From: Epiperipatus broadwayi
Taxonomy: Eukaryota; Animalia; Onychophora
Reading direction: 5' to 3'
NCBI GenBank assembly: GCA_028023455.1
Contig: JAQFVV010000010.1
Location: 13,702,001-13,766,000 of the forward strand
Length of the DNA: 64,000 nt
The notes beneath the pieces were generated by a model, which made no database searches, had not been told where the DNA came from, and saw only the letters and a program-made list of their open reading frames with translations. Below are positions 18,646-58,558 of the stretch, one piece after another; position 1 is the first letter of the stretch, and each line of letters opens with the position of its first letter. The position numbers were made by a program, and so were the translations under genes.

Positions 18646-19035
18646 CCTTTCAACACTTGCACATTACAATCCTTAAATAGATCTTTTCAACACTTCCACG
18701 TTACTATCCTTAAATAGATCTTTTCAACACTTCCATGTTACTATCCTTAAATAGATCTTTTCAACACTTCCATGTTACTGTACTTAAATACATCTTTTCA
18801 ACATTTGCATGTTACTATCCTTAAATAGATCTTTTCAACACTTCCACGTTACTATCCTTAAATAGATCTTTTCAACACTTCCACATTACTATCCTTAAAT
18901 AGATCTTTTCAACACTTCCACGTTACTATCTTAAATAGATCTTTTCAACACTTCCATGTTACTATCCTTAAATAGATCTTTTCAACACTTCCATGTTACT
19001 ATCCTTAAATAGATCTTTTCCACACTTCTACATTA
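18646..19035. repeat. 37-bp minisatellite, about 10.5 copies
   Basis: Unit cttttcaacacttccaYgttactatccttaaatagat starts at 18646, 18683, 18720, 18757 and so on. Confidence 0.95.
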
Positions 19036-34759: not shown

Positions 34760-37700
34760 TTTTTTTATTTAAAAAAACATAGAATAGATTAGTACAATGT
34801 TTATAGATTACAAATAATACATTATTTACATACATAGTATTGACATTAAAAAAAATTAATAATAGTAAATGAAACAAAAAAAATATTATAATGGTGTTGG
34901 GAAAGTAACCACAGACTCCATGTAGCATTAACGATGTTTGGTGGGGCAAGTGCCTGATCTTTGTTTTTAATTTTTGAAATTTTATTAAAAAACAGTGATT
35001 ATAATTTCTTAGATATAAGGTTGAAGCAAAGATGGCATCGTATGAACGAAAGAGTATACATAAGGAAAATAGTGATTCTAATTAAAGAAAAAAAGCTTTT
35101 TTTTATATACTATCAATAAAAATAACACTAGAAGAAATATGAGATTTAATAAATGACTTAATGATGTTTCTATATATGAGAAAAGCCACTGGATTTGAAA
35201 ATGGTGTATTGTTTCTTCAGACTGATGACAAAGAGAGCAAGCTGGATCAATGTTGGTAAAAGACCTTCTCTGTGATAAGAAATGACTAGTAGGTAGAGTC
35301 TCCAAATTAATTTTAGTAACGAAATCAAGATATTTTGGCTCTAGGTACCAGAATTTGAATATTTTGATTATTTGTTTATTAGTGACTTTTAAGAGTAGAT
35401 GGAAAAGGATGGACCATGTTATAGGCCTCCCAAAAGATTATTATTCTGGAGAATGTCTGAACATCAATGTCAATATTAGAAGCTACGGGTTTGATTAAGG
35501 AATGAAAAAAAATTAATTTTACACAGTGGAGGTGTATCGGTAGGATTGACTAGAGTAAATTTCATAGTGTGTGGATAAACAGAAATGAATTTAGAAATAG
35601 TACTAAATGATCTCTGAAATAAAAGGTGTGTATTGAATGGAGGGAAAGGCTATTATCTTTGGCATGCATTTGTAAGATTCTAATATCAATTACAACCACC
35701 CTTTTGTTCCAAAATAGTTTTGAGCAAATAGAGTTGATCTTCTTCTTGAAAGCATTGGTATAGTTGACAATTGGCATATAATAAGTCATCTTTGGAAAAA
35801 TCAGAATGTTAATGAGGAATACTTTTGCGTGGAGCAAAAGGTACACTTTAGAAAGAGATTTAGTTACATTTTCAGCAGATGTAAGAATGGAGTCCTGAAT
35901 GGCTGTTCTCATAGCAGTCATAGGCTTGTAAATGGGAAATCCAAGTAAGTTGTGAGGCGGTGCAGTGAATGGAGAAGAATACCCTTACTAGTGGTGATAC
36001 TCCATGTGAATGATTTATCAAGATTAAACTGAGGTTCATATTGAGCCATATTATTTTCCAGAATAGCAATAAGTGAAGAGAGGTATTTCTTGGAGGGAAG
36101 GAATACAACAAGATCATCCATGATCACCATTCCTTATGCTTACACTGACTGGCAATATGTATGGAGAGTTTTGCCTGTTTTACGATCATTCATGAATGAT
36201 ATATGCTTAACCGCTTTGTCAATCAATGGAACATGTACACAAGGCAATTTTCTCTCTATTTCCAGAAGCAATGTGTTTACATAAGTTATAAAAAAAAATC
36301 CACTCAACAAGGAACCTTAAGGAATAGTTATAGGGTTTGAATGAAAGTGTAATTTTTCCATTAAGAGTGATAAAAATTTCCCTACTCATTAGAGGGTTGG
36401 CTAAAATATAGATAATTGGAACAGAAATATTATGCAATTTTAATAATTCAATAAGAACATCTGTACAGACATAATCAAAAGCTGAAGCAATATCTAGTTG
36501 TACTACTATGGAACCTGCAAATCTTACTTGGTCAATGACAAGTTTAAAAAGGATGATAGCATCAGAGGTGGAAGCTCCCTTTTTAGCAAACTGCAAGTTT
36601 GAGATTACAGGCAGTATAATAGGCTGTATCTTATCCTTAATAATGGATTCAATGACCTTGATAAGTATAGGTGACATATTAAGAGAAGATGGAATAGTAT
36701 TTTGCTTGAGAAACGTAACTATGGGAAAAAAGTCTATCATATTCATAATGATTGACACTGTAAAGAAACTCATATGCATGAAAAGGTATTTAGGGATCGC
36801 ATGAGGACCAGGGTGGATGTTCTTGAGTAAAGATTTCAGCTTAAGCATTATATCAGACTTTGTGAGACAATGACCCTGATGACCTTCACCAAGAGCAGAA
36901 ACAAGTAGTTCTGGGCGGCTGACATTTTACAACTTAGATTTAAAGTGGTACAAAATAGAAGGTAACATGTTAAGACCTGTGCTGAGATGGTTGTCTACTA
37001 TAATTAAGGATGGGACTGGCTTTTTATTTCTATACAATAAAGCCCAGTGGATGTAGCCTTTCGACCAGTTATGAGGTTAAGCCAAAAAGATGTTAGCCTT
37101 TTTAATAGAAAGATACTCAGCCAAGATAAATTGGGTATGTTTATATTGATGCTTAAGAGACATAATTGAAGGAATAGCAGGGTCACAGAAAGTGGCTTTC
37201 AACTTGAAATTAATAGCATCAAGGTCCTTAACTAAAACTGTGGGTGATTTGTTTTTGCTAGTGTAGTGTCTAATGACTGATTGGATAATATTGATAAATG
37301 AAAACCAAGCTACAGTGAATGGTTGAAAAAGAAAGAATGTCTATCTTCTTAAAATAAATTTCTGAGATTACTGCCTCTGAAGATGTAACTCTCAGTAATG
37401 CTCATATTATATTGTTGTAGCTAAGAATAGGTTGTGTGTGAAAATTAGTATTGTGCTGATAATGCCAGTTGATCTGAAAAAACTACTGATTCCAAAGAAG
37501 GATTAATCATAAAATGCAGATCAGGCGAATAAAATAGAAAATCAATGAGAATTGAATATTTCAAAGTATATATAAGGAGAAGGCATTACTGGTGAAGAAG
37601 CCTTCACCATTCATCAGTTTACAATTAATAAAGTGTAGGTATTTAGCCACAAACTCAGTATAAGGCATATTAAAGTTGCTAAACAGATTAGGAAAAGGGT

Positions 37701-55364: not shown

Positions 55365-55505
55365 TTTTAAAGAGAAGGTAATTAATCCCTTACACATGCG
55401 CTGAACTTTTATATTCAATCAATATTTTTTGTTGAATGTAATGTTGATTGAATATAACAGTACAGCACATTTGTAAGGGGTCGATTACCTTCTATTTAAA
55501 ATTAC
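55365..55505. repeat. Short hairpin/inverted repeat (~60-bp arms)
   Basis: ttttaaagagaaggtaatt..cccttaca..atattcaatcaa versus ttgattgaatat..tgtaagggg..attaccttctatttaaaa. Confidence 0.75.
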
Positions 55506-56286
55506 AGTTTGAAATGCGCTAGGAAATCTCTTAGTTTATTTTATATTATTACTAATAATTCTGATTAATAAATTTATATACCATTTATTACTATTATAGT
55601 ACAAAATCGTCAAATGAGTATTTTTTTTTGATTGCATTGATATTATAAGTTGTCCATTTATTAATATCTGAAAATCAGTTGTTTAAATCTGCAGAGATAT
55701 TTTATTTTTAATGGAAATAATTTTAACTCATTATAGAAAATGTAGATGGAATTACAAGATATGGGTTTAATATTTATAGGAGAATGGTACTTCTATTTCC
55801 AGTGGTGAAGGTTGCATCTTGTTATAATGATTCTATTTTTATTTTGTAGTCAGACACATCAACACTCATCTGACCAACCTAGATTAATCTGCAACCCAAT
55901 TAAGAATAACTAGATACTCATTTACTTATCAATTATTGAATAGCTAGTTAGATTGACTACAAATTGACCATCTAGAAAAATTTTAGGCATGCTTAAAAAT
56001 CTTATTTTTTTTTAAAAAAAAAACTCCATCAGCATTCAAACATACTTTCAACTAGTCAACAAGTGGTGAAATTGTATATTTCAGAAATTAATTCCTCAAA
56101 ACTATTTCTCATTTAGTGGCCGATACTTTGATAATATTTTGTTTTAAATATTGAGCTATCTTTTAAATGTTTTAATATAAAAAGTATTTTTTAAATATAC
56201 TCTTCAAATAATGTTTATTTTTACAAAAATTATCAGATACACTTGTCCCAAAAAACACCAACTATTAAACTTGCAATAATATTTCT

Positions 56287-57283
56287 AAATAATATTTTAA
56301 TTTGCGAAGCGCATATAGTTGAAATTGAAATATATCGAGATACTGCCAAATCTCTAGCACTCATTATAATACTTAACTGACAGCTAATCAGATGTCATGG
56401 ATAGCTGTCCAAATGACATACAAACTCAAACACACAACAAAGATTTTACGAGAAAAGGGCAGCCACCCTTTTCTCTACTTTTCTTTCTATATATCTAAGC
56501 CAGTCGTAAGCATTTAGGTTTGAAAGCTTTTTTTAAATATCTTCACAATTAACTCACTGAGTCTAAATCATAAATGTACAACGTGAAATCCTATGATTTA
56601 CTACAAAGTAGTTTTTAGAATAAATAACAAGCAGTAAAGTATGTAAATAATATTTTAATTTGCAAAGCGCAGATAGTTGAAAATTGAAATAAATCGAGGT
56701 ACTGCTAAATCTCTAGCGCTCATTAACTACCTAAATGCTTATGACTGGCTAAGGTATATAGAAAGAAAAATAGAGAAAAGGGTGGCCACCCTTTCTCATA
56801 AAATCTTTGTTGTGTGTTTGGGTTTGGATATCATTTGGACAGCTATCCATGACATCTGATTGGCTGTCAGTTAAGTATTATAACGAGCGTTAGAGATTTG
56901 GCAGTATCTCGGTTTAATTCAATTTTCAACTATCTGTGCTTCGCAAATTAAAATATTATTTACATATGTTACTGCTTGTTATGTATTCTAAAAGCTACTT
57001 TGTAGTAAATCATAGGATTTCGCGTTGTACGTTTATGATTTAGATTCAGTGAGTTAATTGTGAAGATATTTAAAAAAAGCTTCAAGCTTTCAAACCTAAA
57101 TGCTTACGACTGGCTTAGATATATAGAAAGAAAAGGTAGAGAATAGGATGGCCGCCCTTTTCTCGTAAAATCTTTGTTGTGTGTTTAGGTTTGAATGTCA
57201 TTTGGACAGCTATCCATGACATCTGATTGGCTGTCTGTTAAATATAATGAGCACTAGAGATTTGGTAGTATCTCAATTTATTT
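56287..57283. mobile_element. Fold-back of a 358-bp tandem unit (about 1.2 units forward, 1.55 inverted)
   Basis: Unit starts at 56287 and 56645; the inversion point is ~56730. 13-bp TSD caataatatttct at 56274-56286 and 57284-57296. Confidence 0.88.
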
Positions 57284-57304
57284 CAATAATATTTCTGTAG
57301 TTTA

Positions 57305-57488
57305 ATTTTCACTACACCACTCTCATGCAAGGTAGGGAATGGTTTCTGGCCACTTTTAACACCTTGTGGAGGGATATAGACATGTGGAAAATGTCTGTTT
57401 ATGTGTTTATGATTATATCCCTCCACAAGGTGTTAAAAGTGGACAGAAATCATTCCCTACCTTGAGTCAAAGTGATATAGTGAAAATG
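57305..57488. repeat. Inverted repeat (~70-bp arms)
   Basis: caaggtagggaatggtttctggccacttttaacaccttgtggaggg versus ccctccacaaggtgttaaaagtggacagaaatcattccctaccttg. Confidence 0.85.
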
Positions 57489-58395
57489 TTGGATAATATC
57501 TAGTCTAATGAATGATTAAAATAAGTTATTAATTAAACTTAACAAATGTAAATATTTTAAATTTTATCCTTAATTCTGTGCCAATAAATGATGCATTATG
57601 GAAATAAAGATGGTGCGTCAAATCTCTAATAATTCAGTTTTTGTAATGTAATGTTACAAAACCAATTTTTATTAGTATTCAAAATAAAAAAATTATAATT
57701 TCAATTTCATTGAATCAAAGTAAAAAAGGAATATTTTTCCTATGTTCATTTTTGATACTTTTCTAATCTTGAAATGCCTAATCCAGAATGAAACCAAAAT
57801 AGCTTTTAATTTTCATTTTGTAATTGACAGTCTTAGATTAGCAGTTTGTACTCTGATCTTCCTTTACAAGCCTTGCAGTTTTATTTTTTTACAATTTTTT
57901 TTTCAGTTATCTATCACATTACAAAAGAAAAGTAGGAAAGTAATAATAAATGGGAATTCAATGATTAGTGGGAAATTGCTTTTTTATTTATATTGAGGCC
58001 ATCCATTGTTATGAATTGTTTATGAAAATACATTATTGTATAGTAGAAGACATAATCTTAATAGACATAATGTCATAAGTGTCTTATAAAATTGCTTTAA
58101 CATTTAAAAAAAGCCTTTCCTTTTCTTAAATCTTAGTTCCTAGTATTTGCAGGTATTTTAAAAATATTGAAGGAAAAATAGATAAAATTATCCTTAACAA
58201 GCAGTTATTTTATAAATTGAAGAATTTTTATGATGTGTACTAAACAATTGAAAAACTTTTTTCATTACTTGCAAAATTCTTTTCATTAGCTCTGGTTGAA
58301 TCTGCTGACATAAGTGATATAATATATACATATGATACCATTTCCAACTTTCTTATACACTTAACAATACCATTTTTATACCAAAACTTTACCCT

Positions 58396-58427
58396 TACAG
58401 TTTCGACTGTCCTGCAGTCATCATCAG
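58396..58427 (-). ncRNA. Minimal hammerhead ribozyme, core intact
   Basis: CUGAUGA-U-GACUG-CAGGA-CAGUC-GAAAC-U-GUA. Confidence 0.65.
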
Positions 58428-58558
58428 AGCTACAATGTCCAAATATATAATTATACAATTAATACTTTATATACACAGTCAATAACATACATCTTAGTCT
58501 GACCATTATAAATAATCATTTTCCATTTTATTATTCTACCCCTTAACTAATTTTATTT

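Follow-up and report, generated by a model that had tools for sequence, protein, structure and literature searches.

Fold-back insertions of a hammerhead-less 358-bp repeat family point to mobilisation by Penelope-like machinery

The fold-back at positions 56287–57287 of the window (the whole stretch of 64,000 nucleotides of Epiperipatus broadwayi DNA that was analysed, numbered from its first letter) is likely to be the insertion of a high-copy, non-coding, hammerhead-less and non-autonomous short retroelement, integrated in trans by a Penelope-like element (PLE) through its reverse transcriptase (RT) and GIY-YIG endonuclease. Animal retrozymes are defined by their hammerhead, and tandem arrays are usually put down to ribozyme-made circles and rolling-circle copying. 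The family described here is without a hammerhead and is present in thousands of copies, with tandem and fold-back insertions and a one-sided tail; we argue that this architecture comes from Penelope-type machinery. We further argue that mobilisation in trans can do without a ribozyme, in agreement with the observation that hammerhead mutants still insert in vitro (PMC11167929). The 358-bp element is otherwise an ordinary decaying repeat.

Architecture of the insertion and of its genomic copies

The insertion in the window consists of 1.22 direct units, of 358 bp each, followed by 1.55 inverted units. Arm A (56287–56725; + strand) contains the direct units, with unit 1 at 56287–56644 (358 bp) and unit 2 at 56645–56725; the latter breaks off at 56725, at approximately unit position 80, with BLAST extending the match to 56737. 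The direct-repeat family D4 also stops at 56725, and the direct-repeat family D6 and the inverted pair I5 both start at 56729; the inversion junction is formed by the 3 nt outside both arms (56726–56728). Arm B (56729–57287; − strand) contains the inverted units, running from unit position 233 to 1 at 56729–56961, and from 358 to 38 at 56962–57287. Unit positions 1–37 are missing from arm B, and are present as a tail at the outer end of arm A only (56287–56323; + strand), where they carry a small hairpin, TGCGAAGCGCA.

A sequence-only reading of this region had described a unit at 56287–56644 with ~85 bp of a second unit, an almost spacer-less inversion at ~56730, and ~1.55 inverted units lacking the first ~38 bp. 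Each of these features is borne out, with the refinements that the second direct unit reaches 56725, that the junction comprises 3 nt, and that the missing segment is unit positions 1–37; the three hairpins named in that reading are likewise present in the sequence. The same reading proposed a 13-bp target-site duplication (TSD). The 13-nt sequence CAATAATATTTCT is indeed found at 56274–56286 (left copy) and, as an exact repeat, at 57284–57296 (right copy); the right copy overlaps the last 4 nt of arm B (microhomology CAAT). The TSD is given as 9–13 bp, of which 9–12 of the 13 nt are certain (at least the last 9–12 nt of the left copy being a true duplication), and up to 4 nt (CAAT) may instead be microhomology with unit positions 38–41.

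A search of the assembly (eukaryotic, 5.6 Gb, 27% GC) with the unit returned 3,703 first-look candidates; 29 independent loci were analysed, a sample in which copies containing one full unit or more are over-represented. The outer end of one arm lies at unit position 1–5 in all copies (29/29). Fold-backs account for 22 of the 29 (76%), each with a different inner junction; the outer end of their inverted arm is at 37/38 in about 15 of the 22, at 40–46 in four, and at 74–81 in three. The simple copies (n = 7) all start at position 1 (site 1 below), two being of the form [1–358][1–38] and five ending at 128–160. Across the 29 copies, arms contain between ~1.1 and 3.5 units, and the inner ends of the position-1 arm are clustered at 92–99, 119–139 and 160–166. 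Position 38 (site 38 below) is also a recurrent cDNA end, in 4 of the 29 copies (L004, L006, L021 and L017). No fold-back (0/22) has both arms starting at one site, which corresponds to P ≤ 0.5^22 if the choice of site is independent.

TSDs of differing lengths (7–16 bp), some of which carry one or two mismatches, were identified in the majority of the 29 copies by exact-match search and by reading of printed flanks; a T directly precedes the position-1 arm in 22 of 28. The copies are dispersed single insertions, not arrays. A related species carries the family as well. Since the layout recurs in 29 copies, every one of which has a junction and a TSD of its own, the fold-back is neither a chance arrangement nor an assembly artefact. 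In contigs from sequencing runs of uncertain type, guessed to be RNA, the family is present and its single-copy flanks are absent; low-coverage DNA would give the same picture.

Full units are ~92% identical to each other, with the variation mostly at CpG sites. Identity is 92.2% within an insertion versus 90.6% between insertions, and the within-insertion pairs A1–B1, A1–A2 and B1–B2 are all 92–93% identical; decay after insertion swamps any signal that might separate rolling-circle from multimer templates. The family is an old burst that is now decaying neutrally.

Relationship to Penelope-like elements

Reported PLE insertions include partial tandems, an adjacent inverted and 5′-truncated copy, and a 30–40-bp tail that is often at one end only (PMC8557442). 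In vitro, both strands of the target are cut and extended by PLE protein, preferentially at AT-rich sites; reverse transcription begins at two neighbouring sites within the RNA, and what lies between them is the genomic tail (PMC11167929). The 358-bp family resembles PLE insertions in its partial tandems, its adjacent inverted 5′-truncated copy and its tail at one end (here 37 nt), as well as in its two apparent internal RT start sites, its AT-rich target and its variable-length TSD. By analogy with the PLE model, the tail at 56287–56323 would thus be what separates the two RT start sites. Non-autonomous, multicopy head-to-tail insertions have also been reported on the PLE side, for Chlamys (MRC1) (PMC8557442; PMC11167929). 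The family differs from PLE insertions in that its unit is only 358 nt and non-coding. A second difference concerns the start sites, whose use in vitro did not differ between top and bottom strands (PMC11167929); in our sample, site 1 on one arm is obligately paired with site 38 on the other.

In the mechanism that we propose, a multi-unit or repeatedly copied minus-strand RNA would be bound by PLE protein, and an AT-rich target would be nicked on both strands, 7–16 bp apart and usually after T. From each 3′-OH, cDNA would be primed at a different one of two internal sites, site 1 for one strand and site 38 for the other, which lie 37 nt apart; the two same-sense cDNAs would extend inward for one to three units, tending to stop at a stable ~110-nt rod in the RNA or at the next start region. 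Joining of these cDNAs at a copy-specific position would create a fold-back of head-to-head arms in which only one end has the 37-nt tail, and failure of second-strand priming would give a simple [1–358][1–x] insertion; a ribozyme would not be required for either outcome. A staggered break that primes on both strands at defined RNA sites accounts for the combination of fixed outer ends with a free inner junction. The variable-length TSDs point to target-primed reverse transcription (TPRT), and rule out both cut-and-paste and rolling-circle DNA transposons.

The absence of same-site fold-backs, together with the start at site 1 of all seven simple copies, suggests that site 1 is used for first-strand priming and site 38 for the second, inverted priming. 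A possible cause of the pairing is that two protomers of a PLE protein dimer sit 37 nt apart on one RNA; the strictness with which start sites are paired on the two arms constrains models of how such a dimer primes on both target strands. The cDNA ends at position 38 may reflect, equally well, protein at the next start region blocking the RT, or the 5′ end of the RNA.

In terms of this mechanism, the + strand of arm A would be the cDNA sense from RT start site 1 (unit position 1), and the minus strand of arm B the cDNA sense from RT start site 2 (unit position 38–42). We infer that the template RNA is the minus strand of 56287–56644, because both arms read in the cDNA sense from the outside inward. 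Support for a minus-strand template also comes from the coding PLE ORFs, which read toward the outer ends, and from RNA folding, which is better for the minus sense; minus-sense RNA is more stable than plus-sense RNA in 35/35 units (mean −83.8 versus −68.7 kcal/mol), with folding z values relative to shuffled controls of −3.3 and −2.2, respectively. The predicted fold of the minus-sense RNA contains a ~110-nt G-U-rich rod, the apex of which is the hairpin GAGAAAAGGG/CCCUUUUCUC. This hairpin (hairpin C) lies at 56450–56475 in the window, as GAGAAAAGGG-CAGCCA-CCCTTTTCTC, with more copies at 56773–56798 and 57139–57164. The arm A inner ends at 119–139 and 160–166 fall on the side of the rod that the RT meets first, and, given the predicted fold, the clusters of cDNA ends would fit stalling of the RT at the rod. 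A second hairpin (hairpin A; 56337–56354; GAGAT-ACTGCCAA-ATCTC) lies 12 nt from start site 2 and is at least 90% conserved (35 units); it is a candidate RT recognition element or roadblock. The multi-unit template itself may be a read-through transcript, a template-jumping product or a circle.

Coding PLEs are plentiful in this genome. A first-look search for GIY-YIG gave more than 10,000 candidates; 150 of these were scored, and all exceeded the cut-off. The protein-atlas neighbours of the PLE ORFs carry RVT_1 and GIY-YIG. The PLE ORF at L061:4372–7005 (+) was identified by motifs read by eye together with the protein atlas, and a Pfam scan of this ORF gave no match, probably because its composition, in a genome of 27% GC, is extremely K/N/I-rich. 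Proteins encoded by this genome may therefore be under-called by domain scans.

Among the coding PLEs, the arrays examined were L061/62 (L061+L062 2258–10617), L063 and L069; in these, units repeat in tandem every ~3.13 kb and are joined to an inverted arm with no spacer. On one side the array starts exactly at AATTTAAAACCCG; on the other it starts ~57 nt further in for L063 and L069, and ~130 nt further in for L061/62. Their TSDs are 10–15 bp and their ORF reads toward the outer end. The start-site offset of ~57 or ~130 nt is longer than the published 30–40-bp PLE tail; the one-sided asymmetry of the ends is common to the coding arrays and the 358-bp family. Comparison of the unit with 40 sampled PLE loci, which form one DNA-related group, revealed no similarity by blastn (word size 7) or by nhmmer with the family profile.

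The PLE families of this genome also carry a minimal hammerhead-like motif, ~105 nt upstream of the inner start site. It has the form UUGAWAAW-GACUA...UAGUY-GAAAC-RUUG, with a U3-A8 core, and is present at L063:7949–8006 with equivalents in L044–L070; between families, stems I and II have changed in a compensatory manner. The motif goes undetected by Rfam. The 358-bp family, unlike these coding PLEs, is without it.

Ribozyme searches and alternative origins

The sequence-only reading reported that no CUGANGA/GAAA core was to be found on either strand, and proposed a comparison with the Rfam ribozyme models. The comparison, made with Rfam 15 (E ≤ 10) on 55500–58500 of the window and on 8 further copies, identified no ribozyme, and returned only sub-threshold miRNA-precursor-like matches on the fold-back hairpins. 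NUGANNA, stem II and GAAA were also sought, with swapped 3-8 pairs allowed, by regular expressions combined with stem matching on both strands of the circularised unit, and no candidate had a Watson-Crick 3-8 pair; both searches thus uphold the absence of the core. We also built a covariance model, R1, from an alignment of the hammerhead variant of this genome's PLEs. R1 scored 30–82 bits on held-out PLE loci, and its best score in 94 kb of family loci was 15.9 bits (E 0.45), with no match recurring in most copies. Two candidates were considered and rejected as chance: the minus-sense AUGAGUG...hairpin A...GAUA, which is loosely hammerhead-like by eye and fails at A9 and A14, and the plus-strand TAGTTGAAA, which shares 9 nt with a single PLE hammerhead family and is on the wrong strand with no stem II. 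With neither a canonical hammerhead nor the local variant, the 358-bp family is, by definition, not a retrozyme.

The resemblance to retrozymes is nonetheless considerable. As for metazoan non-LTR retrozymes (Cervera & de la Pena 2020, PMC7229834; Li et al. 2026 preprint, doi 10.64898/2026.07.22.740005), the family has non-coding, low-GC tandem units in the 150–450 bp range, TSDs of more than 4 bp, co-occurrence with PLEs and a highly self-paired RNA; it differs in lacking the defining type I hammerhead, and is known here from sequence rather than as circRNA. The sequence-only view of the element as RNA-mediated, retrozyme-like and non-coding, with no recognisable ribozyme, stands, but the circular template and new self-processing motif that it also envisaged are unsupported, and are not needed because tandem arms, a spacer-less inversion and a one-sided tail are the footprint of PLEs (PMC8557442).

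A true retrozyme analogue, in which the plus or minus RNA cuts itself, or is cut with the assistance of protein, near 38/39 and perhaps at 358/1, to give circles and, by rolling-circle reverse transcription, tandem arms, is in our view unlikely. Arms of more than one unit do imply a multimeric or circular template, position 38 is both the preferred cDNA start (~15/22 fold-backs) and a recurrent cDNA end, and the minus-sense RNA has a rod-like predicted fold whose stability exceeds that of shuffled controls, resembling retrozyme circRNAs (PMC7229834). However, Rfam 15, the core scan and model R1 all find no ribozyme in the family; two sharp sites 37 nt apart are the behaviour of a PLE RT without any ribozyme (PMC11167929); and the equal identities of the A1–B1, A1–A2 and B1–B2 pairs carry no rolling-circle signal. 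The neutral decay, being mostly at CpG, renders covariation unreadable. We consider it slightly less probable still that site 37/38 is the cut of a new self-cleaving or protein-assisted motif that replaces the hammerhead and yields a unit-length or circular minus RNA. This site is located within a UUUCAA-UUUCAA direct repeat, and the conserved hairpin GAGAU-N8-AUCUC is 12 nt away.

Two origins that involve neither PLEs nor ribozymes were also weighed. Variable-length TSDs and AT-rich targets would fit any TPRT element, including a SINE-like RNA moved by a LINE and inverted by L1-type twin priming, and the window contains an ORF with a weak RVT_1 match. As in L1 twin priming, the 5′ part is inverted, TSDs flank the insertion and the junction shows microhomology, but the family has no poly(A) or microsatellite 3′ tail and instead has a fixed internal 3′ end (...AAATTAAAATATTATTT in the RNA sense), inversions are the majority form (76% of copies), and the inverted arm has a fixed outer end (37/38), which twin priming would instead scatter. 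Rfam moreover detects no tRNA-, 5S- or 7SL-like head, and we regard a LINE-mobilised SINE as very unlikely. The long inverted arms of tandem units, as in Foldback elements, and the palindromic hairpins might alternatively be taken to indicate a DNA-based origin, as a Foldback/TIR transposon, as Helitron/Helentron cargo, or as a satellite rearranged by replication fold-back. Such an origin is highly improbable, given that the TSD length is not fixed (7 to 16 bp), that the outer ends do not form a pair of inverse complements (position 1 versus position 38), that the inner junction and arm lengths differ between copies, that copies occur singly and dispersed instead of in arrays, and that there are no TC...CTRR ends and no confinement of insertion to AT or TT dinucleotides. 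A Helitron/Helentron or a satellite, named in the sequence-only reading as what would refute its proposal, is excluded by the variable-length TSDs and asymmetric ends.

Insertion site and other repeats in the window

Immediately downstream of the insertion, the window contains a separate and extremely abundant repeat (57285–57546), with inverted 79-nt arms at 57305–57383 and 57409–57487 that are 87% complementary. It gives a sub-threshold, miRNA-precursor-like Rfam match (mir-3688; 41 bits versus a gathering score of 84) and looks like a MITE-like hairpin element. Loose read ends place the 5′ end of this repeat at 57285–57288, from which it follows that the left TSD copy is a duplicated piece of the repeat terminus, and that the insertion took place 9–12 bp inside the 5′ end of the repeat. 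Copies of the neighbouring repeat were sought in the analysed loci as a proxy for the empty site, and none was found there.

Elsewhere in the window, the ORF with similarity to RVT_1 (36219–36848; − strand) encodes 209 aa, with a weak match (E 7e-5, below the Pfam cut-off), and is probably a fragment of a decayed retroelement. A tandem array at 18648–19035 comprises 10.5 copies of a 37-bp unit, which are 93% matching.
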